Both the position numbers and the translations under genes were made by a program. Below the pieces are notes generated by a model. The model was not told the DNA's origin, ran no database searches, and was given only the letters and a program-made list of their open reading frames with translations. From sequence record ON529857.1: DNA of 64,000 bases, one strand, 5' to 3'. Position 1 is the stretch's first letter; each line of letters opens with the position of its first letter. Positions 36,822-48,012 of this stretch are shown piece by piece.

Positions 36822-37244
36822 TTAACGTGCTCCTGAGATCATGGTGACGATGGCGCCCACAACAGCGGCCAGAAGCGCTGATCCGCCGGCCGTCAAGGGG
36901 CCGATGATGATTTCCATGCGGGTGAGGCGTTTTTCCAACGCCAGCTTGTTCGCCGTGAAGTCACGCTCGACGCGATCCAGCTCATCGGCGGCGTCTTTTT
37001 CGACTCGCGCCAAACGTGTATTGGCGTCTTTCAGGTCGCCTTCCAGCTTCGCCAGCTTGTTGGGCTGATCCTGGGCTTCGATACGAGCCAGGCGGTCGCG
37101 CACGTCGGTGAGGTCGTCGCGGAACGAATCAAACCGCGTATCGACCTTGTCGACCAGGCGATCCATCTTGTCGTTGAGGGAGGTGAAGAGGCGCTCGACC
37201 GTATCGCGGAAACGGTCTTCAGGCGTCAGGCCGGGGCTAAGCAT
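36822..37244 (-). CDS. Coiled-coil protein with a single C-terminal TM helix (holin/XhlA-like architecture)
   Basis: Heptad-like charged region followed by hydrophobic IIIGPLTAGGSALLAAVVGAIVTMI. Confidence 0.7.
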   Translation of the reverse strand: MLSPGLTPEDRFRDTVERLFTSLNDKMDRLVDKVDTRFDSFRDDLTDVRDRLARIEAQDQPNKLAKLEGDLKDANTRLARVEKDAADELDRVERDFTANKLALEKRLTRMEIIIGPLTAGGSALLAAVVGAIVTMISGAR

Positions 37245-37737
37245 CGAGACGCACCTCGGTGATATGGGCCAGGCCGCACACCGCGACCGCTTCGCCGTTG
37301 ACCATCAAGGGCCACTTCCAACCGTAGAAAACCAGCTCCACGCCCAGCTTGTCCGGATGGGGGACAGCGCCCTGGATCGACAGGGTGCGGCGTTCAATCA
37401 CACAGGCGAGGTCTTCAGCCTCGAACGCGCCGGCGTCCCCGGTTTCCCACAGGTCGGCGTCGGGCCGCATGACATAGTCGATAGCGCGGATGCCCGTCGC
37501 ACGGGCGTAGGGGCGATTGACGTGAACCATGGCGAACGTGCCGTCGGGTCGGATCGCTTTGATCCAGGCCGGGATAGGCAGGTGTTCGAAAAAGCCCGTC
37601 AGCAGCAGGCAAGGGTCCTCGGACCGGCAATCAGCGGACGCTTCTCGCAGCGTTTCCAGGAGGTTCTGAATATCCTGGCGCGGTTTGAGCGGGATGCCCA
37701 ATCCGGCGTCGGAAGGGCGGTGGTCGATGTTCGACAC
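37237..37737 (-). CDS. Stand-alone PAS-domain protein
   Basis: FFEHLPIPAWIK...FAMVHVNRPYARATG...DADLW...AFEAED...KWPL...VAVCG matches the PAS_4-type pattern; GTG start. Confidence 0.75.
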   Translation of the reverse strand: MSNIDHRPSDAGLGIPLKPRQDIQNLLETLREASADCRSEDPCLLLTGFFEHLPIPAWIKAIRPDGTFAMVHVNRPYARATGIRAIDYVMRPDADLWETGDAGAFEAEDLACVIERRTLSIQGAVPHPDKLGVELVFYGWKWPLMVNGEAVAVCGLAHITEVRLDA

Positions 37738-37778
37738 GGCCTTCGTCCCCGACGTTTAGCACGTTGATAATGGCCGGG

Positions 37779-37807
37779 AGGCTAAGCAATTTTTGGCTGA
37801 ATGTCAA
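37779..37807 (-). promoter_or_regulatory. Sigma70-type promoter for the PAS/TM genes
   Basis: TTGACA-N17-TAGCCT. Confidence 0.55.
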
Positions 37808-38006
37808 GGATTTCGTCAACGATTGACAGCCAAAATATTTCTTGACGAGGTCAAAAACACATCCCGACCGGGCGGGGTCCGGTCGAGACATGCCGACGAT
37901 AGATAAGGAGGACTCCAAGGTCACGGAATAGAACCCCGCCGCGACAATGACGTCTTTCTCCACCTAGCAGGTTACTCTTCCGACTGTCAACACATTACGT
38001 CAAAAA

Positions 38007-38089
38007 TGGCGACGCGCCCCGGACTCGAACCGGGCCTCTCAACCTTCGGAGGGTTGCGCCTGACGATGATCCTGCTCGGCCTGCGCGTC
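38007..38089 (-). tRNA. tRNA-Arg(CCG), enlarged D-loop
   Basis: Acceptor GACGCGC/GCGCGTC, loop CTCCGAA, T-loop TTCGAGT, CCA; 17-nt D-loop. Confidence 0.8.
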
Positions 38090-38109
38090 ATGTTTGACAG
38101 AAAAGGTGG

Positions 38110-38192
38110 TGGCGCCCTGGGTCTGATTCGAACAGACCTTCTCAACTCCTGCTACGGCTACTGGTTTCGTAGACCAGCCCGGTTACCAGGGC
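38110..38192 (-). tRNA. Atypical tRNA-Arg(ACG), D-arm nearly absent, long variable region
   Basis: Acceptor GCCCTGG/CCAGGGC, anticodon arm CTGGT-CTACGAA-ACCAG, T-arm and CCA intact; only 8 nt between acceptor and anticodon stems. Confidence 0.65.
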
Positions 38193-38222
38193 GTGTTGAC
38201 GATCACACTTCGTCAGTATAAA

Positions 38223-38306
38223 TGGCTCTTGCGGTAGGACTCGAACCTACAAGCCTTTCGGCGCTCGCTTAACAGGCGAGTGCGGCTACCATTTCGCCAC
38301 GCAAGA
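38223..38306 (-). tRNA. tRNA-Asn(GTT) with class II-type variable arm
   Basis: Loop CTGTTAA; variable arm CGCCGAAAGGCTT; CCA encoded. Confidence 0.8.
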
Positions 38307-38318
38307 TCAAAGAACAGT

Positions 38319-38392
38319 TGGTTCAGGGGGAAGGAATCGAACCCTCATTTGCCGGACCAAAACCGGACGTAATACCGTTATACCACCCCTGA
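38319..38392 (-). tRNA. tRNA-Gln(TTG)
   Basis: U1-A72 pair, loop TTTTGGT, CCA. Confidence 0.88.
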
Positions 38393-38399
38393 ACAATAG

Positions 38400-38474
38400 T
38401 GGTAGCGGGTGAAGGAATCGAACCTTCGCGTATCGGCGTGTGATACCGATGCCTTACCACTTGGCGAACCCGCT
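38400..38474 (-). tRNA. tRNA-Val(CAC)
   Basis: Full cloverleaf, loop ATCACAC, A73, CCA. Confidence 0.8.
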
Positions 38475-38556
38475 ATGCTGAAAGGCGAATCTCCACCTCT
38501 CAGGTCGTCTATGCGCTGGATCACATAATCCTTCGTTATGCGCTCTACAGCATAAA

Positions 38557-38631
38557 TGGTCCTCGAACTTGGAATCGAACCAAGATCATCCGATTATCGG
38601 TCGGGTGCACTAGCCGTTGTGCTATTCGAGG
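38557..38631 (-). tRNA. tRNA-Ile(GAT), C33
   Basis: Cloverleaf, loop CCGATAA, CCA. Confidence 0.85.
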
Positions 38632-38633
38632 GC

Positions 38634-38708
38634 TGGTAGCGGATGCAGGAATCGCACCTGCGCATGTCGGCGTGTCATACCGATGCCTTTCTACTTGGCT
38701 AATCCGCC
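38634..38708 (-). tRNA. tRNA-Val(GAC)
   Basis: Loop ATGACAC, variant T-loop TGCGATT, CCA. Confidence 0.8.
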
Positions 38709-38720
38709 ACACAGTAAAGG

Positions 38721-38795
38721 TGGCCCACTCGGGAGCGCTCGCATCTCCGTCTCGGGGATTTCACTCCCGCGCTACTCTGTCTCAGCTACGAGTGG
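38721..38795 (-). tRNA. tRNA-Phe(GAA), degenerate T-arm
   Basis: Acceptor CCACTCG/CGAGTGG, loop GTGAAAT, T-loop TGCGAGC, CCA; stem mismatches. Confidence 0.6.
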
Positions 38796-38796
38796 A

Positions 38797-38879
38797 TGGT
38801 GGGTGGTTGAGGCATCGAACCTCTCCCGTTAGGCGCGGTGTTACAGACCGCTGTCGGAGCCAACCGACTTTAACCACCC
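38797..38879 (-). tRNA. tRNA-Tyr(GTA)
   Basis: Loop CTGTAAC, ~10-nt variable arm, CCA. Confidence 0.85.
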
Positions 38880-38929
38880 GAATATTTAAATCAGTCTCCG
38901 CCGGTCATGGCGTTCTCCTGGGACATGGT

Positions 38930-38966
38930 AAAAGAAAAGGCCCGCCTGGGTTTCCAGGCGGGCCTT
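38930..38966 (-). terminator. Intrinsic terminator (attenuator) ahead of tRNA operon 1
   Basis: 13-bp stem AAGGCCCGCCTGG-AAAC-CCAGGCGGGCCTT followed by TTCTTTT. Confidence 0.9.
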
Positions 38967-38993
38967 CGAAGCTTGTTGCTGACTGTCTGGGGA

Positions 38994-39089
38994 CTATCCG
39001 CCCACCAAACCATCGCACATGCACGAACGGCCCGCCCGGTAAAACCGGACGACGCGAATGTTCTGCACGTTTTGGCGATAGGTCATCAT
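38994..39089 (-). CDS. Leader peptide 1 (31 aa, leaderless): MMTYRQNVQNIRVVRFYRAGRSCMCDGLVGG
   Basis: Not in the ORF track. ATG lies 7 nt after the -10 element; residues 4-18 use only amino acids of the downstream tRNAs. Confidence 0.85.
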   Translation of the reverse strand: MMTYRQNVQNIRVVRFYRAGRSCMCDGLVGG

Positions 39090-39096
39090 GGATTTG

Positions 39097-39125
39097 CTTT
39101 TACGCGATCTCTTTTATCGTGTCAA
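39097..39125 (-). promoter_or_regulatory. Sigma70-type promoter of tRNA operon 1
   Basis: TTGACA-N17-TAAAAG. Confidence 0.75.
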
Positions 39126-39320
39126 CTATTTCTTGGCGTGAACCCAAGATTTTTCCAGCGCGGGCTCCCAAACGCCCCAATTCCCAACAGTCGGATAGTC
39201 CCGGTAACGCCATCCGCCGCAGTGCCGGCACATCGCTTCCAACTGGCGGCGCTCTTCGGGAAAGGGCTCACAGTTGCCCCAAACGTCGCACGCGGGATCA
39301 CCTTCTTCACCATCCGTCAT
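39126..39320 (-). CDS. Small Cys/Trp-rich hypothetical protein (possible metal binding)
   Basis: C-x5-C and CRHC motifs; ATGA overlap with def. Confidence 0.6.
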   Translation of the reverse strand: MTDGEEGDPACDVWGNCEPFPEERRQLEAMCRHCGGWRYRDYPTVGNWGVWEPALEKSWVHAKK

Positions 39321-39859
39321 CCGTGACGGACACTCCGACGATGCGCCGCGAACTTCTTCAAAAGCATGGTGCGCTTCAACGCGGAGACCCGATCGATGTT
39401 GCGAATTCCGTCAAGGTGGTCCAGCTCATGCTGAATGCAGATCGCCTTGTAGCCGGACCCGTAAAGGGTCTGGCGCTCACCCTGGACGTCGCTGTATTCG
39501 ACCGTCACCTCGCGGTGGCGGCTAACGTCGAAGAAGACGCCCGGCATGGACAGACAGCCCTCCGGAAGCGTCACCATATCGTCCGACCTGTCGATGATGA
39601 CGGGATTGATCAACACCAACTTGGCGAGGCCCGGCAACATGCTTTGGGTCGGCAGCGGGCCATTGGGGAGATCAAGCATGGTGAACATCCGCACCGGAAC
39701 ACCCACCTGGACCGCTGCCAGGCCTGCGCCGTCCGCCGTCAGCATGGTGTGCAGCATGTCATGCGCCAGCGTGAGGAGGTCTTCATCGATCTCGGTGATT
39801 TCGGTCGAGACCTGTCGCATCAACGGATCGGTGCACGGTAGAATTTGTCGAAGCGCCAT
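39317..39859 (-). CDS. def: Peptide deformylase
   Basis: GAGLAAVQVG, EGCLS and QHELDHLDG motifs; start moved to MALRQIL at 39859 (TGATG overlap). Confidence 0.95.
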   Translation of the reverse strand: MALRQILPCTDPLMRQVSTEITEIDEDLLTLAHDMLHTMLTADGAGLAAVQVGVPVRMFTMLDLPNGPLPTQSMLPGLAKLVLINPVIIDRSDDMVTLPEGCLSMPGVFFDVSRHREVTVEYSDVQGERQTLYGSGYKAICIQHELDHLDGIRNIDRVSALKRTMLLKKFAAHRRSVRHG

Positions 39860-40098
39860 CAGGGCAAGCTCCCCAGACCGCCGGCGGCGGTGCTGCGGCC
39901 ATCGCGCCAACGGCCCACCAAACTGACCAGATGATCCGCGCGCGACTCCAGCTCCTCCAGGACGTCAATCATCTGCATCAAGGCCACGCACGCGTCCTCC
40001 AGACAGATGTCCTGGAGCTGGACGAGACGGCCCCCGACCATGACCTGATAGCCATGATACGGGGGCGTGCCGGCCGATGCGTTATCGGCGTGGGGCAT
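39859..40098 (-). CDS. Hypothetical protein
   Basis: Coupled by overlaps on both sides. Confidence 0.65.
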   Translation of the reverse strand: MPHADNASAGTPPYHGYQVMVGGRLVQLQDICLEDACVALMQMIDVLEELESRADHLVSLVGRWRDGRSTAAGGLGSLP

Positions 40099-40388
40099 CA
40101 GATTTCGCCGAGCGCCGACATATACAGGTCCAGGATGGCGTCTTCCTCCTGGCGCTTGGCCTTGTCCTGCTTGCGCAGGCGAATGACCTTGCGCAGAATT
40201 TTGACGTCGTAGCCTTCGCCCTTGGCCTCAGCGAAGACCTCCTTCATGTCCGCCATGACGGCCTGTTTGTCCTCTTCGAGGCGCTCCAGGCGTTCGATGA
40301 TGGAGCGCAGTCGACCCTGGGCCGAAGCGGTCAGGGCGTCGGAGTCGGCGAAGGTGGTGTCGCCGTCGGTCGTGGTGGGGTGAATCAT
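40098..40388 (-). CDS. gapR: GapR / DUF2312 nucleoid-associated protein homolog
   Basis: LRSIIERLERLEEDK...KEVFAEAKGEGYDVKILRKVIRLRK...ILDLYMSALG is the DUF2312 signature. Confidence 0.9.
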   Translation of the reverse strand: MIHPTTTDGDTTFADSDALTASAQGRLRSIIERLERLEEDKQAVMADMKEVFAEAKGEGYDVKILRKVIRLRKQDKAKRQEEDAILDLYMSALGEI

Positions 40389-40409
40389 TCTGTTCTCACA
40401 GGCGTTGCG

Positions 40410-40634
40410 TCACTGAGTGACAAGGAAATGAAGAATCGCCAGAAGATCGCGATCGACACGCGGGTCCTGCGCCTTCTGTTCGATGATGCGCAGGGCGGCC
40501 TTTCGTCGCGCGACCTGCCGGCCCACGACAATATTGCCATGCTGTTCTATGGCGTTTTCCAACTCTTCCGGATCGACATAGGTGGAAATCGGGTCGCCAT
40601 ATTTGCGGGCGCCGGGAAAACGAAACTCAGTCAT
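40410..40634 (-). CDS. Hypothetical protein
   Basis: GGAGGAGG 9 nt before ATG at 40634 (MTEFRFPG). Confidence 0.6.
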   Translation of the reverse strand: MTEFRFPGARKYGDPISTYVDPEELENAIEQHGNIVVGRQVARRKAALRIIEQKAQDPRVDRDLLAILHFLVTQ

Positions 40635-40772
40635 CCGTCCCATCCTCCTCCGCCACAAATCGTCCGTCGACGAAGGCGCCCACACGGGTGACGCCGTTCA
40701 GACGTTGAACCAGCTGTCCCTCCTCAATCCAGTAGTAGGGGATGCCCCACTCCTCATGGAAGAGAACGTCGG

Positions 40773-41075
40773 TCACGCTTCACCGGGGTGTGCGGCGTAA
40801 GGTGCGAAGGTGAAGTGATCGGGCGCCGCGACCGGCGGCAGATCATCAGCCGTGATCGGGCGGATGAAAAAGCGCATCAGCGCATTGTCGACGTTTTGCC
40901 AGGACGCCGCCTTCCATTCATCGCGCGCCGCCTCCCAGGTGGGAAAGACGCCCCGCACCACGACGGCCTCCGGATTACGAAACGCCGCATGGAACGTCGC
41001 CTTGTCTCTGGCGGGGTCCGTGACGGCCAAGTCCGCCATCTCTCCGCCGTAGACGGAATAACCGCAGACGCACAT
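40773..41075 (-). CDS. DUF4170-like protein
   Basis: VYGGE...GVFPTWEAARDEWKAASWQNVDNALMRFFI resembles the alphaproteobacterial DUF4170 family. Confidence 0.7.
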   Translation of the reverse strand: MCVCGYSVYGGEMADLAVTDPARDKATFHAAFRNPEAVVVRGVFPTWEAARDEWKAASWQNVDNALMRFFIRPITADDLPPVAAPDHFTFAPYAAHPGEA

Positions 41076-41839
41076 CAGCCGATCTCCACGATCAAATTGG
41101 GGTCGAAGTTAGGGTTCAACTCGTGCCCGATATAGCCGCGCGGATTGGTCAACACGCGCGTCTTGCCGATCTGGTAGTCGCTGGAATCGTGCATGTGACC
41201 GTGAACCCACAGGTCCGGCTCATACTCCAGGATCAGCGGCTCCAGGCGGGACGCATAACAGGGATTGAGCTCACTGCCGCGATAACGGGGATGGCTGGAC
41301 TGCTCCGAGGGCGCATGGTGGGTCACCACCACGGTCGGCCCATCATGCGCCAGGCGCAGCTGCTCCCGCAGAAAGAAAACGCTGCGCGTATGGAGGGATA
41401 GCACCGCCTCAGGCGTCAGGAGACGCATGGGCTCCGTTTCGATCTGTCGGTAGTCCGTCATGCCGCGCCGGGCCGCCATCATCGACAGATGTTGCGTGCC
41501 GTAGAGGTTGAAATCCGTCCACAGGGTCGCGCCCAGGAACCGCACGCCGTCGATCACGAGCGCCTCGTCATCCAGAACGTGCACCGAAGACCCCAGCTCG
41601 ACCGCCTTGGCCTTCATCTTCTCGATGTGGCGCTTAATTCGACGCTTGCCGTAGAACTCGTGATTGCCGGGGACGTAGACGACCGGGACGCCGGGAAAAT
41701 GACGATCCGCCCAGATCACGCCCACAACACCCGTGGCGGCGTCGCCGGCCAGGACCAGCACATCGCAAGGCGCCGGCGTGTAGTCGCGACCCATGCCGCC
41801 GAACTCCAGGTGCAGGTCGCTCAGAATGTTGATGCGCAC
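41075..41839 (-). CDS. Calcineurin-like metallophosphoesterase
   Basis: SDLHLE, AGD, PGNHE, VVTHHAP and WVHGHMH motifs. Confidence 0.92.
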   Translation of the reverse strand: MRINILSDLHLEFGGMGRDYTPAPCDVLVLAGDAATGVVGVIWADRHFPGVPVVYVPGNHEFYGKRRIKRHIEKMKAKAVELGSSVHVLDDEALVIDGVRFLGATLWTDFNLYGTQHLSMMAARRGMTDYRQIETEPMRLLTPEAVLSLHTRSVFFLREQLRLAHDGPTVVVTHHAPSEQSSHPRYRGSELNPCYASRLEPLILEYEPDLWVHGHMHDSSDYQIGKTRVLTNPRGYIGHELNPNFDPNLIVEIG

Positions 41840-41856
41840 GCGTATCCCCGTAAAAC

Positions 41857-41975
41857 TGGAGCGGGTGGGAAGACTTGAACTTCCGCCTCCGGGTTAGCGA
41901 CCCGGCACTCCTGATCTCGGCCGAGACCCGCAACCCGGTTCGGCCGAACCTGCTGCGCCCTAGAGCTTCACCCGC
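41857..41975 (-). ncRNA. tRNA-like element (GCT loop, Gly-type acceptor) with ~50-nt D-loop insertion
   Basis: Acceptor GCGGGTG/CACCCGC, U73, CCA, T-arm and anticodon arm CCGGG-TCGCTAA-CCCGG; the D-stem encloses two palindromic hairpins. Confidence 0.7.
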
Positions 41976-41979
41976 ATAA

Positions 41980-42395
41980 GGCGGCAGGAGTTTTAGAGGT
42001 GATGCGTCACCGGGCAAGCCCCCTGCCAGAAACCCCGTCTCCGCTTTTGTTAGGTCCAGAGACGAACGACCCTTCAAAGGCTCACATGGCACGACGTCGT
42101 CTCACGCGCTTCAGGCGTAGTCGCCCGAAACCGCAAGCCCGAGAGGTGGTGCACGATGGTATCGCCTTCCCGTGGCGACGTCTCGCGACGCCGCGATGTC
42201 TTACGACGCCTCTTCCCGGCCGCGTTCCGGAAAGAGGCGTCTAGCTGTTTGCGTGGAAACCGGACAAGCTCGCCCTACTCCCTAAGCAGTCCACGCTCCT
42301 CTGCTCGCGTCGTCCGGTCTGACGCTTCGCTCATCCAAGGCCTGGGTCTTTCGACCGGAACGTGCGCTACGTCAGGCCGCCGGGGATGTCTGTGT
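41980..42395 (-). ncRNA. Putative large structured ncRNA (~420 nt)
   Basis: No credible ORF. 15-bp hairpin at 42205..42241, GNRA-capped hairpins (GGTC-GAAA-GACC, CGTC-GCGA-GACG) and further helices; promoter-like TTGACG at 42424..42429. Confidence 0.55.
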
Positions 42396-42429
42396 GGGGA
42401 TTACTGGCACTGTTCGACACCGACGTCAA

Positions 42430-42465
42430 CAAAGAAAAACGCCCCGGCGTTTCGGCCGGGGCGTT
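42430..42465 (-). terminator. Intrinsic terminator ending tRNA operon 2
   Basis: AACGCCCCGG-N8-CCGGGGCGTT followed by TTTCTTT. Confidence 0.85.
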
Positions 42466-42467
42466 CT

Positions 42468-42782
42468 TCAGAGGTTCATCATCCACTGCTTGCGGTGGCG
42501 CGTGAAATCCTTCCAGGATTTGCCGGCGCGACGGGACGCCATGATGTCGTCCCAGGAGGACGGCAGGTGCTTCCGGCGCCCACGCACGGGGACGACGCGA
42601 TCATGAACGTCGCCCGCGTTTCGGCGGCGCTCCTGCATGGTGCGCGGATGCCGGAAATACTGCCGCCAGCGATGGCGAAAGCGCCGGCAGGGGTAGGGGT
42701 CGCCGGGCTCCGCATGGTAGATCGTCCAAGGCCCGACGAAATAGTATCCGGTATGGGTGATGCGTTGGAATTGGGGCTTCAA
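42468..42782 (-). CDS. Basic hypothetical protein (104 aa)
   Basis: GGAGG before the TTG start; C-terminal HLPSSWDDI...SWK...KQW motif; followed by a terminator. Confidence 0.7.
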   Translation of the reverse strand: MKPQFQRITHTGYYFVGPWTIYHAEPGDPYPCRRFRHRWRQYFRHPRTMQERRRNAGDVHDRVVPVRGRRKHLPSSWDDIMASRRAGKSWKDFTRHRKQWMMNL

Positions 42783-42885
42783 AACAGCCTCCTGTCAGGT
42801 TGATTACCTAACGGGTGCTGTGCTCCAGGTAGAACTTGATCATCATGGCCCCATGATACGGCAAGCTGGGCCGTTGGTCCAGAAT

Positions 42886-42974
42886 TGGTGGATGGAGCAG
42901 GGATCGAACCTGCGTAACGCTCTCGCGTGTCGACCGCTTAGCAAGCGGCTGCCTTACCTCTCGGCCACCCATCC
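42886..42974 (-). tRNA. tRNA-Ser(GCT)
   Basis: Loop TTGCTAA, long variable arm, CCA. Confidence 0.88.
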
Positions 42975-42981
42975 GGGGTGG

Positions 42982-43066
42982 TGGCGGTGCGCCAGGGAAT
43001 CGAACCCTCGACCTTGCGGTCGGCTACGGTTTTCAAGGCCGCTTGTCCCCATGGACGCTGCACACC
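42982..43066 (-). tRNA. tRNA-Ser(TGA)
   Basis: Loop CTTGAAA, long variable arm, G73, CCA. Confidence 0.82.
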
Positions 43067-43071
43067 AATGA

Positions 43072-43161
43072 TGGCGGACGGCGAGGGATTTGAACCCCCG
43101 GACCCTTGCGGGCCGCCTGCTTTCCGGGCAGGTGCCTTAAGCCGGACTCAGCCAGCCGTCC
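43072..43161 (-). tRNA. tRNA-Ser(GGA), C33
   Basis: Loop CCGGAAA, long variable arm, G73, CCA. Confidence 0.88.
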
Positions 43162-43166
43162 GTTGT

Positions 43167-43384
43167 TGGTGGAGGCGAGGGGATTCGAACCCCCGTAGAC
43201 GCCGAACCCCCGCATTACCAGGGGCCGATCTTCGGTTTAGAACGCGTGTGCCGCCCTGACCATCTTCCGCAGGCCAGGAGGTCTATCGTAACGACCCCGT
43301 CGATCGGTTGCCTCTGCGCCCCGGTTTTACCCGGACCGTTATTCTGTTCCACGGTGCTCATGCCGAAACCCGAGCGACGCCCCC
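43167..43384 (-). ncRNA. ssrA: Short one-piece tmRNA-like gene (218 nt)
   Basis: Ala-type acceptor GGGGGCG/CGCCTCC with G3-U70, A73 and CCA; T-arm GGGGG-TTCGAAT-CCCCT; stemless D-loop ending GGTTTCGGC; no anticodon arm. Confidence 0.65.
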
Positions 43385-43393
43385 GTGAAGAAA

Positions 43394-43481
43394 TGGAGGA
43401 TGGTGTGGGATTCGAACCCACGGAACCTTGCGGTCCTCCGGCTTTCGAAACCGGTGCGATCGGCCACTCCGCCAACCATCC
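43394..43481 (-). tRNA. tRNA-Ser(CGA)
   Basis: Loop TTCGAAA, long variable arm, CCA (U73). Confidence 0.88.
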
Positions 43482-43488
43482 ATATCAG

Positions 43489-43674
43489 TCAGACGGTCGC
43501 CGGACTGTAGTTGTCGATGTCGTCGACCCGGATCGCCGTTCCCGCCGCGATCTGGCGGTCGGCGCTCAACAGGTCGGCGACCAGGGCCTCCGCCGAGACG
43601 TCGCCTCCGGTGGTGGCGAACTTGACGTTCACCATTCCGTTGTCGTACATCTCGGCGATCGCTGAGCGATCCAT
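43489..43674 (-). CDS. Small hypothetical protein inside tRNA operon 2
   Basis: AAAGG before MDRSAIAE; natural amino-acid composition. Confidence 0.55.
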   Translation of the reverse strand: MDRSAIAEMYDNGMVNVKFATTGGDVSAEALVADLLSADRQIAAGTAIRVDDIDNYSPATV

Positions 43675-43707
43675 GGCAGGCCTTTCTGCCGGCATCACCG
43701 GCGGTTA

Positions 43708-43783
43708 TGGTGGAGATGAGGGGAGTCGAACCCCTGACATCCTGCTTGCAAGGCAGGTGCTCTACCAACTGAGCTACATCCCC
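43708..43783 (-). tRNA. tRNA-Ala(TGC)
   Basis: Canonical; G3-U70, loop CTTGCAA, CCA. Confidence 0.95.
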
Positions 43784-43813
43784 AAGATGGGTGTCAGTTT
43801 TCCTGACGAATGT

Positions 43814-43889
43814 TGGGCCTGGCACTCGGATTCGAACCGAGCCGTGCGGTTCCACAAACCGCCGCCTCCACCGCAGAGGCTTTACCAGG
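43814..43889 (-). tRNA. tRNA-His(GTG)
   Basis: Loop TTGTGGA, C73, CCA. Confidence 0.85.
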
Positions 43890-43892
43890 ATT

Positions 43893-43980
43893 TGGTCGCA
43901 GCGACAGGGATCGAACCTGCCCGGCCTTTCGGCCACCAGCCTCTCATGCTGGCGCGTCTACCAGACTCCGCCACGCTGCG
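43893..43980 (-). tRNA. tRNA-Leu(GAG)
   Basis: Loop ATGAGAG, class II arm, CCA. Confidence 0.9.
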
Positions 43981-43989
43981 ATCAAGTTT

Positions 43990-44075
43990 TGGTGCCGGTG
44001 GTGGGATTCGCACCCACCCGCCACTAAGGACACCAGTTTCTGAAACTGGCGCGTCTACTGCTTCGCCACACCGGC
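43990..44075 (-). tRNA. tRNA-Leu(CAG), copy with variant T-loop TGCGAAT
   Basis: Loop TTCAGAA, class II arm, CCA. Confidence 0.85.
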
Positions 44076-44085
44076 AATGATGTGT

Positions 44086-44171
44086 TGGTGCCCGCCCCCG
44101 GACTCGAACCGGGACGCCACAAGGGCCACGCCTTTTGAGGACGCTGCGTCTACCTTTCCGTCCAGACGGGC
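44086..44171 (-). tRNA. tRNA-Leu(CAA)
   Basis: Loop CTCAAAA, class II arm, CCA. Confidence 0.88.
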
Positions 44172-44181
44172 TTGAGAAAGA

Positions 44182-44267
44182 TGGTGCGGGCGAGAGGATT
44201 CGAACCTCCCCGGCACAAGGCCACGGGCATCTGAAGCCCGCGCGGCTACCAGCTTCGCCACGCCCGC
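44182..44267 (-). tRNA. tRNA-Leu(CAG)
   Basis: Loop TTCAGAT, class II arm, CCA. Confidence 0.9.
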
Positions 44268-44271
44268 ACTT

Positions 44272-44353
44272 TGGAGAACCACGGTGGAGTCGAACCACTT
44301 GCGCCTGGATTAAAAGTCCAATCCCGGCCACCCGGATTTAACGCTCGTGGTCC
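44272..44353 (-). tRNA. tRNA-Lys(TTT), enlarged D region
   Basis: Loop CTTTTAA, T-arm, CCA; ~25 nt between acceptor and anticodon stems. Confidence 0.75.
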
Positions 44354-44368
44354 TTGATTCTCAAATAT

Positions 44369-44455
44369 TGGAGGATATGGTGGGACTCGAACCCACGATG
44401 GACTTTCGTCAGAGGATTAAGAGCCCTCCCCTCTCGCCGCTGAGGTGACATATCC
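44369..44455 (-). tRNA. tRNA-Lys(CTT) with long variable arm
   Basis: Loop CTCTTAA; variable arm TGACGAAAGTCCATC; CCA. Confidence 0.8.
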
Positions 44456-44494
44456 GCTTAAACTGTATAGCGTCTCCATGAAGACTGTTGTTGA

Positions 44495-44565
44495 TGGTGC
44501 CAGCGGAGCGGGATCGCACCCTCCTCCAACCACTACGAAAGGCTGGTCCTCCTAGAGGCGCCGGC
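44495..44565 (-). tRNA. Atypical tRNA-Thr(CGT), minimal D-arm
   Basis: Acceptor GCCGGCG/CGCTGGC, D-arm CCTC-TAG-GAGG, loop centred on CGT, variant T-loop, CCA. Confidence 0.6.
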
Positions 44566-44573
44566 GTTGTTTT

Positions 44574-44644
44574 TGGTGCCAAGAGTGGGAGTCAAACCCA
44601 CCCTGAACCCCTACCACGGGCTCGTCCGGTCACCCGGCCTTGGC
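44574..44644 (-). tRNA. Atypical tRNA-Thr(GGT), minimal D-arm
   Basis: Acceptor GCCAAGG/TCTTGGC, arm AGCCC-GTGGTAG-GGGTT, T-loop TTTGACT, CCA. Confidence 0.62.
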
Positions 44645-44651
44645 GTTATCC

Positions 44652-44726
44652 TGGTCAGAGCGGGAGGGATTGAACCTCCGACCCCTGCCTTCCCGAGACA
44701 GTGCGCTACCCCTGCGCTACGCTCTG
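44652..44726 (-). tRNA. tRNA-Pro(GGG), C33
   Basis: C1-G72 pair, loop TCGGGAA, CCA. Confidence 0.85.
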
Positions 44727-44729
44727 ATC

Positions 44730-44804
44730 TGGTCTGGGCCGAGGGGATCGAACCCCCGTCCTCCGGCTCCCAAAGCCGGCGCCTAACCGCTCGGCCAGAC
44801 CCAG
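44730..44804 (-). tRNA. tRNA-Pro(TGG)
   Basis: Loop TTTGGGA, CCA. Confidence 0.88.
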
Positions 44805-44823
44805 ACTGTTGTTAAGGAATGAA

Positions 44824-44901
44824 TGGTCTGCGTATCAGGATTTGAACCTGAGACCCCCGCGCTCCGAAGGCGGTACTCTGACCAGGCTGAGCTATACGCA
44901 G
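44824..44901 (-). tRNA. tRNA-Pro(CGG)
   Basis: Loop TTCGGAG, CCA. Confidence 0.88.
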
Positions 44902-44906
44902 ATGTG

Positions 44907-44945
44907 AAAAACGAAAAGGCCCCAAAGGCGATGCGCCTGGGGCCT
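44907..44945 (-). terminator. Intrinsic terminator (attenuator) ahead of tRNA operon 2
   Basis: AGGCCCCA-GGCG-CAT-CGCC-TT-TGGGGCCT followed by TTTCGTTTTT; ends 5 nt before tRNA-Pro. Confidence 0.88.
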
Positions 44946-45015
44946 AAAACAGCTGCTGATTTGGGAGTTCAGCAGGTGATCGGCCCCTCGGGCGCCTCAC
45001 CTGCTGCGAGAGACC

Positions 45016-45153
45016 TTAGATGGTCTCCGTTGCAGAGGTGACGCCACCGGTGGTGGGGGATTTCGGCGACAGCGTGGCCGGCGCATGGGCGAGCGTCGAC
45101 AGCGCCGTAGCGGCGGTCGAATGAAGGCTCAGCTTGTGCGACAACTTGGTCAC
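45016..45153 (-). CDS. Leader peptide 2 (45 aa): MTKLSHKLSLHSTAATALSTLAHAPATLSPKSPTTGGVTSATETI
   Basis: Not in the ORF track. AAGGA 8 nt before GTG; residues 2-35 use only T, K, L, S, H, A and P. Confidence 0.88.
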   Translation of the reverse strand: MTKLSHKLSLHSTAATALSTLAHAPATLSPKSPTTGGVTSATETI

Positions 45154-45201
45154 GAGAGAAATCCTTAGAAGGAAGGGCGCCGAAACGCGATTGAAGTCTC
45201 A

Positions 45202-45230
45202 CCTTTACAGCAAGCTTTTCCGCTTGTCAA
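45202..45230 (-). promoter_or_regulatory. Sigma70-type promoter of tRNA operon 2
   Basis: TTGACA-N17-TAAAGG. Confidence 0.75.
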
Positions 45231-45305
45231 GCAAAGATCGAATTTTATTTCGAGGGCCGCCCCTCACGACGGTTTATGTCAGAGTTCCCGACACACGTCA
45301 ATCTG

Positions 45306-45353
45306 AAAAAGAGATGCGCGCGGCCTCGGGGGAGCGGGAAGGCCGCGCGCATC
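45306..45353 (-). terminator. Intrinsic terminator insulating the operon 2 promoter
   Basis: 14-bp stem GATGCGCGCGGCCT/AGGCCGCGCGCATC followed by TCTTTTT. Confidence 0.85.
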
Positions 45354-45356
45354 GGG

Positions 45357-45644
45357 TCACACCGGCCTCGGGGACGGGGCGGCCGGATCGGGAACATCGC
45401 GGTGTTCGGGGAGGCCACGATGATTCTTCTGGAGCAGCTCACGCAGAGGCGGGACCGGAACCGGCCCATAGATCACCTCGACGACACGGCGCCGGATTTT
45501 TCGGGTAGTCGGGAGGGGGACGCCGCGCCGAATCAATTCAGCGCCGGCCGCCGAACTCGACAGCGATCCTGACAGATAGATGTCCAGAAGCGCCGATGTC
45601 GGCATGGCGCACATGCGTTGCGCGCGACGGGGATTATGGCCCAT
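45357..45644 (-). CDS. Basic hypothetical protein
   Basis: GGAGA before MGHNPRR; followed by a terminator. Confidence 0.5.
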   Translation of the reverse strand: MGHNPRRAQRMCAMPTSALLDIYLSGSLSSSAAGAELIRRGVPLPTTRKIRRRVVEVIYGPVPVPPLRELLQKNHRGLPEHRDVPDPAAPSPRPV

Positions 45645-45743
45645 AGGGTCTCTCCAAGCTGGGTTAGCCCAGGCGGAGGACACGCCTAATGGTTCAGACG
45701 CTGTGTGGCGTCCATCCGCCTGGGTTCATCAGCGGGAGAGGAA

Positions 45744-45938
45744 TCAGGGGGTGTCGGGTTTGGTCGGCGAGAACACCGAAACAACCGCGTCGAGCGCCCG
45801 CTTGAGGCGATTGGGACGCTGGGTCAGCGCCGAGGCGCAAACCTTCTTGATCTCGTCATGGGTCAAAGAGCCGGGGTCGCGCAATCCGCGCGCGGCGATC
45901 GACGCTACAGGGGCGGAGGTGACTTCCTGGCGAGACAT
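45744..45938 (-). CDS. Hypothetical protein (64 aa)
   Basis: Follows tRNA-Asp; AAGGA upstream. Confidence 0.55.
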   Translation of the reverse strand: MSRQEVTSAPVASIAARGLRDPGSLTHDEIKKVCASALTQRPNRLKRALDAVVSVFSPTKPDTP

Positions 45939-45954
45939 GACGTAAAGAAATCCT

Positions 45955-46029
45955 TGGCGAGCCTAACGGGAGTTGAACCCGTCTTTCCAGCGTGACAGGC
46001 TGGTGTCCTAACCGATAGACGATAGGCCC
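45955..46029 (-). tRNA. tRNA-Asp(GTC)
   Basis: Loop CTGTCAC, G73, CCA. Confidence 0.93.
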
Positions 46030-46057
46030 TTTCCAGGGATGACGGTCTAGGAGGTGT

Positions 46058-46135
46058 TGGCACAGCCGACGGGGGTCGAACCCGCATTATCCTGCTTGAA
46101 AGGCAGGTTTCCTAGTCCATTTAGAAGACGGCTGC
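46058..46135 (-). tRNA. tRNA-Glu(TTC)
   Basis: Loop CTTTCAA, G73, CCA. Confidence 0.9.
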
Positions 46136-46169
46136 ACAGAACACGAGCCGACCTCTACGAGTACCGCTT

Positions 46170-46235
46170 TTAGGCGGTGCGCGTATCTCGGCCCGTGAAG
46201 GCCTCTCGCTCTCGAATGGACGTCAGGTAGGTCAT
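46170..46235 (-). CDS. Candidate leader peptide 3 (21 aa, leaderless): MTYLTSIREREAFTGRDTRTA
   Basis: ATG 7 nt after the -10 element, the same geometry as leader 1; ends ~35 nt before tRNA-Glu. Confidence 0.55.
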   Translation of the reverse strand: MTYLTSIREREAFTGRDTRTA

Positions 46236-46242
46236 AACGGGA

Positions 46243-46271
46243 CTATTAACAGAATCGCTTTTCGGTGTCAA
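46243..46271 (-). promoter_or_regulatory. Sigma70-type promoter of the Glu/Asp tRNA unit
   Basis: TTGACA-N17-TAATAG. Confidence 0.7.
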
Positions 46272-46441
46272 GAACGACGTCGATCTTTTCGTCGTTTTTC
46301 TTCGGGGACGTCTTCACCAGGCTCTTCCCTAGCATCCCACGCCATCATCAAGGCGACGGCGAAGGCTGGACCCATATCCGCTTCCAGACGGCGCAAAGCC
46401 CGGTCGTTGGCTTGCATGAAGGTCTCGCTGTATTCGAGCAT
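46268..46441 (-). CDS. Small hypothetical protein
   Basis: GAGG before MLEYSETF; start moved from 46579. Confidence 0.45.
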   Translation of the reverse strand: MLEYSETFMQANDRALRRLEADMGPAFAVALMMAWDAREEPGEDVPEEKRRKDRRRS

Positions 46442-46579
46442 GTCGTCCTCGGATGAACAGGGGCCGACTTCAGCGCTCACCGTTTGCCGGGTTGCGCCTG
46501 GGCGGAAGCAGCGCACCAATCCTGCTCGACTGGCCCGGCCCCTCCATCCCTTTCTGTCAGGTTTGACGACAATCGTCAA

Positions 46580-46889
46580 TGTGGAAATGCGGCGGTTACA
46601 GCTTCAACCAGCCCATGAGGGCCTGTGGGTCTTTCGGGCGTCCTGCCCCGCCGCGCCTACTACGACGCCTTTTTCGGCCCCGGAGAACCGGAGAGGGTAA
46701 AATCGACGGGTGACCGCTACCGGCCTCGCCTGCTGGCCCGTCCCAGCGCCCAACCTCTCCGCGCAGCGCCCCTGTGGGCATATGGCCTTCCCGTCCGAAG
46801 ACAGACGCCATGCGGTGGTGGCAGGGCCGCTTGCCCATACACCCGCACGGCCTGGGCGGGGAGAGAAGCAGAGGCGAACCCCGGAAGGA
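46580..46889 (-). ncRNA. Possible structured ncRNA (~310 nt) directly after tRNA-Gly
   Basis: No convincing ORF; nested helices CGGAGAGG/CCTCTCCG and GACGGG/CCCGTC, and CCCCGCC/GGCGGGG closing the domain. Confidence 0.4.
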
Positions 46890-46964
46890 TGGAGCGACCG
46901 GCGGGGATCGAACCCGCGCATGTCAGGGTGGAAACCTGATGCCTTTCCGCTTGGCTACGGTCGC
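46890..46964 (-). tRNA. tRNA-Gly(TCC)
   Basis: Loop TTTCCAC, U73, CCA. Confidence 0.9.
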
Positions 46965-46974
46965 GAAAATAAAA

Positions 46975-47050
46975 TGGAGCGTCCAGTGAGAATCGAACTC
47001 ACCCCTACGCGTTGGCAACGCGCTGTACCCACCAATAATACGTTGGACGC
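46975..47050 (-). tRNA. tRNA-Gly(GCC)
   Basis: Loop TTGCCAA, U73, CCA. Confidence 0.88.
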
Positions 47051-47060
47051 AAAGTAAAGA

Positions 47061-47136
47061 TGGCGCCGGACAAGGGACTCGAACCCTTCACACACAGTTT
47101 TGGAGACCGCTGCTCTACCCCATGAGCTAGACCGAC
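47061..47136 (-). tRNA. tRNA-Trp(CCA)
   Basis: Loop CTCCAAA, G73, CCA. Confidence 0.9.
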
Positions 47137-47144
47137 AGGTATCT

Positions 47145-47696
47145 TTACTTAAATCTTTTAGCCAGAAACTCCATCACACGTTGCGGTGTAGTTTCGTCAG
47201 CTTTTACGCGAAAGTCAATACGCCCTTCCAACAATTCCAACAACTGTAGATCGATTTCCCTGGCTTCGGCCTCATTGTGATGCCGGCCATAGGTCTGATA
47301 GGCGCCGTCTGGGCGCTCCAACCAGATGTTGACGTTGTCGTAGAGATCAAACCGCTCAAACACCTCCCGATGGAAGGCATCCGTTCGATAAGGCCCGGAG
47401 CTGTAGATGCAACTCAGCAGCAGCGGACTATCGGTGACGATCCAATCGACCTGGCCCAGCATGCGACGCTGTCGCCGTTCTTGTTCCTCCAGCACCTTGC
47501 GCTGGTTCGACAAGGAATCGAAATCCCGGTCGAACGAACACTCAGTCGCGTATTCTTCGATCTGGGCCGCCCTGGCCCCATTGATCTTCAGATGAAAGAA
47601 GGTTCCTGCCTTGACGGTAGATTTACCCGAGCACGGCCCTCCCCAAAAGTTCAACACGCGCGTAGGTGTAGACGAGCCCATGCGAAGGACTTTCAT
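47145..47696 (-). CDS. P-loop nucleotide kinase (AAA_28/NadR-like)
   Basis: NFWGGPCSGKST Walker A, IEEYA and VTDSPLLL motifs. Confidence 0.8.
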   Translation of the reverse strand: MKVLRMGSSTPTRVLNFWGGPCSGKSTVKAGTFFHLKINGARAAQIEEYATECSFDRDFDSLSNQRKVLEEQERRQRRMLGQVDWIVTDSPLLLSCIYSSGPYRTDAFHREVFERFDLYDNVNIWLERPDGAYQTYGRHHNEAEAREIDLQLLELLEGRIDFRVKADETTPQRVMEFLAKRFK

Positions 47697-47739
47697 CAAA
47701 GACAGATTTTACAGATAGGCGCGCGACCGCGCCGTGCGG

Positions 47740-48012
47740 TCAGCTACGCCAGGGCGCGTCGTCGTCATCCGAGACAGTGTCTTCGGATGCGCGACGCCGA
47801 CGACCTCGCCCTCGGGCGGGTTCCGGCTCCAGCGCTTCGATCTCCGTCGGCTCTTCATCGGTCGGATCGACCGTTTCCACCGTCGGGGTGACTTCCACGC
47901 GAGTCCACGGCGTGCGCGACCAGCCTTGCTCCAGGACAAGCTTCTGCGCCTTCGACGGAGTAACGTCGAAGGGCTCGCAAAGGTCAGGAGAATAGACGCG
48001 TTCGGTAGCCAT
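47740..48012 (-). CDS. Small acidic hypothetical protein
   Basis: Own promoter directly upstream; VYSP...LV...GWS N-terminus resembles 62548..63012. Confidence 0.7.
   Translation of the reverse strand: MATERVYSPDLCEPFDVTPSKAQKLVLEQGWSRTPWTRVEVTPTVETVDPTDEEPTEIEALEPEPARGRGRRRRASEDTVSDDDDAPWRS

Follow-up and report, generated by a model that had tools for sequence, protein, structure and literature searches.

A probable translated attenuator matched to its own tRNA genes in the Brevundimonas phage vB_BpoS-Kikimora

The stretch of DNA analysed here (the window) comprises 64,000 nucleotides (nt) of the Brevundimonas phage vB_BpoS-Kikimora (ON529857.1), a 312-kilobase (kb) jumbo phage of the Dolichocephalovirinae which infects B. 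pondensis; window position 37000 corresponds to position 223000 of the record. ARAGORN finds 24 transfer RNA (tRNA) genes in this window, arranged in four blocks. Immediately in front of one of these blocks lies leader 1, a predicted promoter followed by a short open reading frame (ORF) and an intrinsic terminator, which is the subject of this report. The genes around this locus are on the minus strand throughout, and the GenBank record carries no annotation from the small gene ending at 39126 to tRNA-Tyr, the leader 1 ORF being unannotated. The features needed to follow the coding part of the leader are these:

39125..39097, minus strand: predicted promoter of leader 1, with a -35 element TTGACA (39125..39120), a 17-nt spacer and a -10-like TAAAAG (39102..39097)
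39089..38994, minus strand: leader 1 ORF, 31 codons and TAG, encoding the peptide MMTYRQNVQNIRVVRFYRAGRSCMCDGLVGG; read from the sequence and conserved in 16 phages
39080..39036, minus strand: control codons 4-18, read from the sequence as TAT CGC CAA AAC GTG CAG AAC ATT CGC GTC GTC CGG TTT TAC CGG

Leader 1 reads ATG ATG ACC, then the 15 control codons, then GCG GGC CGT TCG TGC ATG TGC GAT GGT TTG GTG GGC GGA TAG. A preliminary description of this DNA had given this ORF and its codons 4-18, in exact agreement with the sequence. Translated, the control codons are Y R Q N V Q N I R V V R F Y R, a stretch made up of only seven amino acids, all of which are those of the downstream tRNAs, and all nine downstream anticodons have a cognate codon within it. 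When the six frames of the 64 kb were searched for runs confined to {Y,F,V,I,Q,N,R}, leader 1 held the longest, with 15 codons, the next best being 11; order-1 Markov simulations (n=60) gave a mean longest run of 9.7 and a maximum of 14. The preliminary description had also pointed out that even the isoacceptor pairs match (GTC/GTG and CGC/CGG), which is true; this match is not statistically informative by itself, being too likely by chance, since few codons of these amino acids would go unread. A comparison of synonymous-codon bias between the leader and the long ORFs of the window was uninformative, and neither Pfam nor PHROGs gave a match for any of the three leader peptides described below. 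Plus-strand ORFs that overlap the locus, also without a Pfam or PHROG match, were regarded as spurious.

The genes which leader 1 precedes, together with a very small ORF in front of them, are the following:

38919..38891, minus strand: mini-ORF MTGGD (ATG ACC GGC GGA GAC TGA) with a strong Shine-Dalgarno sequence, AGGAGA, between the terminator and tRNA-Tyr
38879..38007, minus strand: nine-gene block, Tyr-GTA, Phe-GAA-like, Val-GAC, Ile-GAT, Val-CAC, Gln-TTG, Asn-GTT, Arg-ACG-like and Arg-CCG-like
38795..38721, minus strand: Phe-GAA-like gene, from manual and comparative reading
38191..38110, minus strand: Arg-ACG-like gene, from manual and comparative reading, with a weak tRNA-Sec hit in Rfam
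38089..38007, minus strand: Arg-CCG-like gene, from manual and comparative reading

The nine anticodons had been listed at the outset, and six of them (Tyr-GTA, Val-GAC, Ile-GAT, Val-CAC, Gln-TTG and Asn-GTT) are called by ARAGORN, while Phe-GAA, Arg-ACG and Arg-CCG emerged only through manual and comparative reading. These three genes are missed by ARAGORN and by the Rfam tRNA model, the Arg-ACG-like gene giving only its weak tRNA-Sec match, and the GenBank annotation misses them too. Their D or T arms are odd, or an additional arm is present, alongside canonical anticodon loops (GU-GAA-AU, CU-ACG-AA and CU-CCG-AA), acceptor stems and an encoded CCA. Furthermore, the stems of the Phe- and Arg-like genes covary with those of their homologues in CcrPW, Bambus and Bajun; some of these homologues carry a tRNA-Arg or tRNA-Phe annotation, which in CcrPW specifies Arg-ACG and Arg-CCG. 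We accept the three anticodons on this comparison of sequences and regard the tRNA function of the genes as putative. The genome paper on phiCbK reports that Tyr and Thr tRNAs are absent from that phage (PMC3556154), which the present reading disputes.

The block contains tRNA and tRNA-like genes and the 5-codon mini-ORF only. The MTGGD peptide is kept with synonymous changes in Gurke, Bambus and a Logan contig; it takes the form MNNGG in Colossus, CcrPW, Rogue and BL57 and MTGN in BL47, and no mini-ORF is present in phiCbK or Bajun. An HNH_3 endonuclease gene is inserted between tRNA-Gln and tRNA-Asn of this first tRNA cluster in a Bambus-like phage (Logan SRR28625000, L021 1951..2352).

BLAST finds leader 1 in 39 phage records, all of them Dolichocephalovirinae of Caulobacter or Brevundimonas. 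For comparison we used 15 phages (Kikimora, Gurke, Bambus, Domovoi, Bajun, phiCbK, Magneto, Karma, RBC57, BL57, Rogue, BL10, CcrPW, Colossus and BL47), to which a 16th sequence, a relative from a Logan metagenome, was added later; the control stretch of this last one lies fully within the seven-residue set. The control codons of the 15 phages have undergone at least 15 amino-acid replacements, and 13 of 15 remain within the set, where single-base changes would be expected to do so in 24.5% of cases (binomial P = 7e-7). Two or three base changes are needed for several of these in-set replacements (CAA/AAC, AAC/TTT, GTC/CGC and TTT/AAT), and 8 extra synonymous codon states occur in the stretch. 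The two exceptions, Trp in CcrPW and Leu in Colossus, both affect the last control codon, which lies inside region 2 of the RNA structure described below, and 8/8 replacements are in-set once the three codons belonging to the hairpin loop and region 2 are left aside. Such a pattern marks selection on the choice of tRNAs that are called and not on any one peptide. A protein search with the 44-amino-acid ORF annotated in Bambus matched only Domovoi and one Logan relative. Pattern scans for distant relatives returned only the known isolates and one chance match, in a coding region without tRNAs (L018), from IMG/VR, and none from JGI metagenomes.

The start of leader 1 is conserved as well. The stop codon of the upstream gene (39128..39126) adjoins the -35 element, and the ATG stands 30 nt past TTGACA and, as had been claimed and is confirmed in the sequence, 7 nt past the -10-like TAAAAG. 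The -35 element is conserved in the relatives, its 30-nt spacing to the ATG is invariant, the start codon is ATG in every one of them and none has a Shine-Dalgarno sequence. The fixed spacing, the ATG and the lack of a Shine-Dalgarno sequence fit a leaderless messenger RNA (mRNA), and the leader 1 mRNA is probably of this kind, with the ATG at the expected transcription start. In C. crescentus, leaderless transcripts make up ~17% of mRNAs, with a strong preference for AUG among these (PMC8459731). A motif scan of the window found TTGACA-N17-TA 6 times against 0.47 expected, all on the gene strand (minus; 11961, 33578, 37807, 39125, 45230 and 46271), and 3/6 of these motifs stand before leaders of tRNA clusters. 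Between the leader 1 terminator and the last tRNA of the block there is none, the next being at 37807. We infer promoter function at 39125..39097 from these sequence features; a consensus promoter scanner did not flag the -10 of leader 1.

The RNA of leader 1 can adopt alternative structures, whose parts are given here with leader positions numbered from the ATG (window coordinate = 39090 - n):

39080..39011, minus strand: helix 1:2, the anti-antiterminator (nt 10-79, -34.2 kcal/mol), in which the control codons pair with codons 17-26
39052..39044 with 39040..39032, minus strand: core of helix 1:2, a 9-base-pair (bp) hairpin (nt 38-46 with 50-58, -13.5 kcal/mol)
39039..39024, minus strand: region 2, the 5' antiterminator arm, CCGGGCGGGCC-G-TTCG, nearly identical to the terminator 3' arm
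39010..38985, minus strand: stop-codon hairpin (nt 80-105, -14.3 kcal/mol) with TAG (38996..38994) in its loop
38968..38954, minus strand: region 3, CGAA-GGCCCGCCTGG, which pairs with region 2 in the antiterminator and with region 4 in the terminator
38967..38930, minus strand: intrinsic terminator (3:4), a 14-bp GC-rich stem with an AAAC loop, then TTTTCTTTT (-30.2 kcal/mol); a scanner finds 38967..38936 and the T tract

The whole leader folds with a minimum free energy of -81 kcal/mol (z = -6.3). Helices 1:2, 2:3 and 3:4 are mutually exclusive, region 1 overlaps the regulatory codons, and all three helices are conserved. Outside its core, helix 1:2 pairs control codons with 39028..39011. The antiterminator segment GGGCGGGCC has region 3 as its predicted partner, and the antiterminator 2:3 comprises 15 bp (11 bp, a bulged G and 4 bp), with a helix energy of -27.5 kcal/mol and a duplex energy of -30.2 kcal/mol, which 0/1000 dinucleotide shuffles of the upstream 110 nt reach. 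The terminator, GAAGGCCCGCCTGG-AAAC-CCAGGCGGGCCTTT-TCTTTT, lies 25 nt past the leader 1 stop, and the annotations of phiCbK and Colossus place a rho-independent terminator at the equivalent site. The architecture proposed in the preliminary description was thus recovered: its pairing of 39039..39024 with 38968..38954 has the correct coordinates, the small competing hairpin is present and extends to 9 bp in the RNAalifold consensus, and region 3 doubles as the 5' arm of the terminator found by the scanner.

In 11/12 distinct relatives, folding predicts a hairpin whose loop contains or adjoins the stop codon, with stem sequences that differ; in BL57 the stop codon is in the 5' arm. This hairpin may act as a pause or spacer element. 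The stop codons of two further leaders of Kikimora, leaders 2 and 3, also lie in predicted hairpin loops (about 45030..45008 and 46180..46160).

RNAalifold recovers two consensus helices, the 9-bp hairpin with outer extensions and the terminator. Compensatory changes are found in each of the three pairings. In 2:3, G-C becomes A-U in Bajun and G-U becomes U-A in Colossus, and the bulged G is paired by an inserted U in Bajun. In 1:2, G-C changes to A-U twice, the loop-closing pair is split 7 to 7 between U-A and A-U, and GUCCGG/CCGGGC becomes CGCCAG/UUGGCG in Colossus; in 3:4, three pairs are compensated. In a slide control for 2:3, 90% of cells were paired in the true register, compared to <=61% when slid. 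The best duplex between region 3 and the upstream leader occupies one and the same place in six lineages, with its end at leader nt 66-70, and its energy is reached by 0/1000 shuffles in five lineages and by 1/1000 in phiCbK.

A second element in the window repeats the arrangement and a third one may do so; they are listed here with the tRNA blocks of the window:

45230..44907, minus strand: leader 2 element, with a promoter (45230..45206, TTGACA-N17-TA), a Shine-Dalgarno sequence, a GTG ORF and a terminator
45153..45016, minus strand: leader 2 ORF, GTG start, peptide MTKLSHKLSLHSTAATALSTLAHAPATLSPKSPTTGGVTSATETI, unannotated in Kikimora
44945..44907, minus strand: leader 2 terminator
46271..46170, minus strand: leader 3, a possible sister element, with a promoter (46271..46242) and a 21-codon ATG ORF (46235..46170), MTYLTSIREREAFTGRDTRTA
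47136..46890, minus strand: tRNA block Trp-Gly-Gly (ARAGORN)
46135..45955, minus strand: tRNA block Glu-Asp (ARAGORN)
44901..42886, minus strand: tRNA block from Pro to Ser (ARAGORN)
38879..38223, minus strand: tRNA block from Tyr to Asn (ARAGORN), followed by two further tRNA-like genes
44639..44574, 44565..44495 and 44346..44272, minus strand: further, non-canonical tRNA-like genes with Thr-GGT, Thr-CGT and Lys-TTT loops

Leader 2 adjoins the 5' side of the block Pro x3, Thr-like x2, Lys x2, Leu x4, His, Ala and Ser. In the six frames of the 64 kb it holds the longest run confined to {P,T,K,L,H,A,S}, with 34 codons, against 17 for the next best and a null maximum of 21, and all anticodons of its block have cognate codons in it. 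Leaders 1 and 2 use disjoint amino-acid sets, each matching its own tRNA block, with a Fisher P of 1e-8 to 1e-10 in each of six phages. On the evidence of these codon sets, leader 2 is an independent replicate of the logic of leader 1. It is conserved in all relatives (gp083 in phiCbK), with an AAGGA Shine-Dalgarno sequence and a GTG start in the Brevundimonas phages, and GGCGCC..GGGGCC is a plausible antiterminator. The non-canonical Thr-GGT, Thr-CGT and Lys-TTT-loop genes of its block are missed by ARAGORN, by the GenBank annotation and by the Rfam tRNA model.

Leader 3 precedes tRNA-Glu and tRNA-Asp, and its Glu-x-Glu and Asp codons are conserved across phages. Its hairpin is followed in Kikimora by only a weak T tract, and because its fold is no better than shuffles (z = -0.99) we do not claim it as an attenuator.

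Translation-related phage genes surround the tRNA blocks, with a peptide deformylase upstream and a PhoH-like gene downstream (39317..39859, minus strand, and neighbours), and this placement is kept in all relatives. A tmRNA-like (transfer-messenger RNA) element of 132 nt lies at 43298..43167 (minus strand); only its tRNA-like domain, the acceptor and T arm, matches the Rfam tmRNA model, 54 nt replacing the 272-nt tmRNA core, and its 32 bits are below the gathering score of 47.

We consider it likely that leader 1 is a translated, ribosome-mediated transcription attenuator keyed to the downstream tRNAs and gating the nine-gene tRNA operon. Its codon set, together with the terminator and the competing antiterminator, suggests that the phage probably makes these tRNAs only when the cell is short of them. 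A leader-peptide attenuator keyed to its own tRNAs was also the core of the preliminary description, and it is backed by conservation in 16 phages, in-set replacements, compensatory changes, fixed spacing and leader 2. In the following mechanism we infer where transcription starts, that the ORF is translated, what the kinetics are and in which direction the leader responds. Transcription would begin at or beside the ATG, giving a leaderless transcript which a ribosome would start translating immediately. With ample Tyr, Arg, Gln, Asn, Val, Ile and Phe charged tRNAs the ribosome would reach the stop codon undelayed, helix 1:2 would re-form behind it before region 3 is made, 3:4 would form and the polymerase would terminate before the tRNA genes. 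Scarcity of any one of these charged tRNAs would delay the ribosome at codons ~6-14, so that region 1 stays open and region 2 exposed; the delayed ribosome would also hold open the segment otherwise pairing with nt 59-66, which alone of region 2 lie beyond the core hairpin. Region 2 would then capture the emerging region 3 (15 bp), no terminator would form and the polymerase would enter the tRNA genes. With read-through dependent on shortage, tRNA output would feed back on its own demand. Moreover, untranslated transcripts reading in from the upstream operon would fold into 1:2 and 3:4 and terminate, so that the element would also insulate the tRNA block.

In order to model the position of the ribosome, the leader was folded with the ribosome footprint forced single-stranded. 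When the A site is no further than codon ~13, region 2 is free and its 15-bp pairing with region 3 forms in full; A-site positions at codons 16-25 put region 2 under the ribosome, and it is free again from codon 28 to the stop. These results modify two parts of the preliminary description. Read-through had been attributed to stalling at codons 4-17; since stalls at codons ~16-18 would mask the antiterminator arm, the effective window is narrower, roughly codons 6-14. The proposal that full translation leads to termination can be kept, with a different occluder: a ribosome at the stop (38996..38994) no longer covers the arm, and helix 1:2 (39080..39011, -34.2 kcal/mol) is the likelier candidate.

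Several observations weigh against this mechanism. A transcript ending before region 4 has 2:3 in its equilibrium fold even without a ribosome, so that default termination must, in this model, depend on region 2 being kinetically trapped in helix 1:2; equilibrium folding alone gave no decision between termination and read-through. The stop codon is 28 nt beyond region 2, unlike that of the trp leader, a stall at the last 2-3 control codons, which overlap region 2, would promote termination, and the -10 hexamer of leader 1 is weak. The number of control codons per amino acid is only 1-4, with one each for I and F, and sensitivity to a single tRNA should be below that of classical leaders with codon runs (for the principle, PMC1183508); leader 1 may respond best to a broad shortage and less to that of a single tRNA. 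Of the nine tRNAs, 3 are non-canonical and putative in function. Finally, covariation is modest, with 2-3 compensated pairs per helix, since the core hardly varies and there are few independent lineages, and in a shuffle control for 2:3 covariation 20-34/500 shuffles reach the observed values.

The low number of codons per amino acid bears on another explanation, namely that leader 1 is a general sensor of translation and its coupling, reporting ribosome availability and pace with RNA polymerase, with codon identity irrelevant. The topology of the leader would indeed react to any slowing of the leading ribosome, and a leader that reads seven amino acids through few codons each may in practice respond to global translational stress. 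However, this explanation leaves unaccounted for both the disjoint sets of leaders 1 and 2, each matching its own block, and the evolutionary confinement of replacements to the set, and we think it unlikely. It is less probable still that the hairpin is an ordinary terminator or insulator of the upstream peptide-deformylase operon, accompanied by a gene for a small trans-acting protein, so that the tRNA match would be incidental. Such a view can draw on the strength of the hairpin and its annotation as an intrinsic terminator in phiCbK and Colossus, on a 44-amino-acid hypothetical protein annotated here in Bambus and Domovoi, and on a conserved C-terminal AGRS.M.D.G motif. Nevertheless, a conserved promoter stands between the upstream stop and the terminator, which would make the terminated transcript only ~160 nt long, and with a conserved promoter and ORF before it and a conserved antiterminator competing with it the hairpin does not have the setting of a plain operon-end terminator. 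As for the protein, the conserved C-terminal codons coincide with region 2 and helix 1:2, so that RNA constraints explain their conservation, no protein family match was found, and the composition match occurs twice.

The least probable of the explanations, which we would accept only with great reluctance, is a switch made of RNA alone, binding uncharged tRNA or a protein in the manner of a T-box or of protein-mediated attenuation, with the ORF untranslated. Alternative terminator and antiterminator helices also typify riboswitches and T-boxes, and the leader is highly structured; yet Rfam gave no hit to a leader family, T-box or other cis-regulatory element at E <= 0.1 over 37500..47800, and seven different tRNAs could hardly be bound by one RNA. 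Variation in the control stretch, moreover, follows the logic of codons, with third-position changes and multi-base in-set replacements, the distance between the promoter and an in-frame ATG does not vary, and in 11/12 distinct sequences the stop codon falls within or beside the loop of a predicted hairpin.

A translated attenuator keyed to its own tRNAs being the preferred explanation of leader 1, we lean, with less assurance, towards a wider interpretation in which the tRNA blocks, at least two and possibly three of them, form a self-referential homeostat of tRNA supply, each block being gated by a leader that polls its own tRNAs; this would be the first ribosome-mediated attenuation found to control RNA genes and not protein genes. 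All described leader-peptide attenuators known to us target amino-acid biosynthesis, transport or synthetase proteins, which the Kikimora block does not encode. Literature searches aimed at earlier descriptions, with most subscription journals outside their coverage, returned no leader-peptide or attenuator control of tRNA genes, so that a prior description is possible; attenuation is known for amino-acid genes and, as far as we found, not for tRNA genes. The phiCbK genome paper annotates terminators and makes no mention of leaders or attenuation (PMC3556154). This design is kept across the Dolichocephalovirinae, and further tRNA-rich phages may carry it unrecognised.

The genes for tRNAs are usually viewed as promoter-controlled, through growth-rate and stringent control, and the purpose of phage tRNA genes is debated, codon-usage compensation, replacement of degraded host tRNAs and escape from anticodon nucleases having been put forward. 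If true, the proposed mechanism would be direct evidence that a phage monitors decoding capacity and supplies tRNAs on demand, and the virus could top up only those tRNAs made limiting by infection, host codon bias or tRNA-targeting defences. It would also widen the scope of classical attenuation, which would then cover RNA genes and a leaderless mRNA bearing a seven-amino-acid 'bar code'; synthetic biology would gain a compact sensor with several inputs, and the role of phage tRNAs becomes testable with simple reporters in Caulobacter crescentus or Brevundimonas. For annotation, unannotated ORFs of 30-45 codons, 'terminators' before tRNA blocks and several non-canonical tRNAs have been overlooked in these well-studied phages, including phiCbK.

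Among known systems, the enterobacterial attenuators are the classical reference, such as the leader of ilvGMEDA with its Leu, Val and Ile codons and the thr leader with its Thr and Ile codons, and also those of trp, his, leu and pheA. In architecture leader 1 comes closest to the multivalent ilvGMEDA and thr leaders, with which it shares a short leader ORF with regulatory codons, exclusive 1:2, 2:3 and 3:4 helices, an intrinsic terminator and more than one amino acid per leader. In contrast to the enterobacterial leaders, the Kikimora element targets tRNA genes and not biosynthetic enzymes, and it interleaves seven amino acids with 1-4 codons each, where theirs are runs of one to three amino acids; furthermore, its mRNA is apparently leaderless, its stop codon lies beyond region 2 in a hairpin of its own, and it is viral. 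The closest system in purpose is the pheST attenuator of E. coli, in which the pheM leader controls phenylalanyl-tRNA synthetase. There, too, a leader-peptide attenuator controls a component of translation in response to how much of the matching charged tRNA is available, although the component is a synthetase protein and a single amino acid is read, whereas the product in Kikimora is the tRNA itself, so that the loop would be more direct.

T-box riboswitches bind uncharged tRNA directly, need no ribosome and read one specifier codon. In common with the switch proposed for leader 1, they sense the status of tRNA and set a terminator against an antiterminator before translation-related genes; the Kikimora signal, however, appears to be codon-based and translated. 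In mycobacteria, leaderless polycysteine short ORFs act as cysteine-responsive attenuators, with one logic at several loci (a 'ribulon'; 10.1101/834739). A leaderless short ORF serving as a ribosome-pausing sensor, and the use of one logic at several loci, would be features of both systems. In the mycobacterial case control is translational, the stalled ribosome unmasking a downstream ribosome-binding site in response to one amino acid and for metabolic genes (10.1101/834739), whereas the output of the Kikimora leader is an intrinsic terminator standing before RNA genes.

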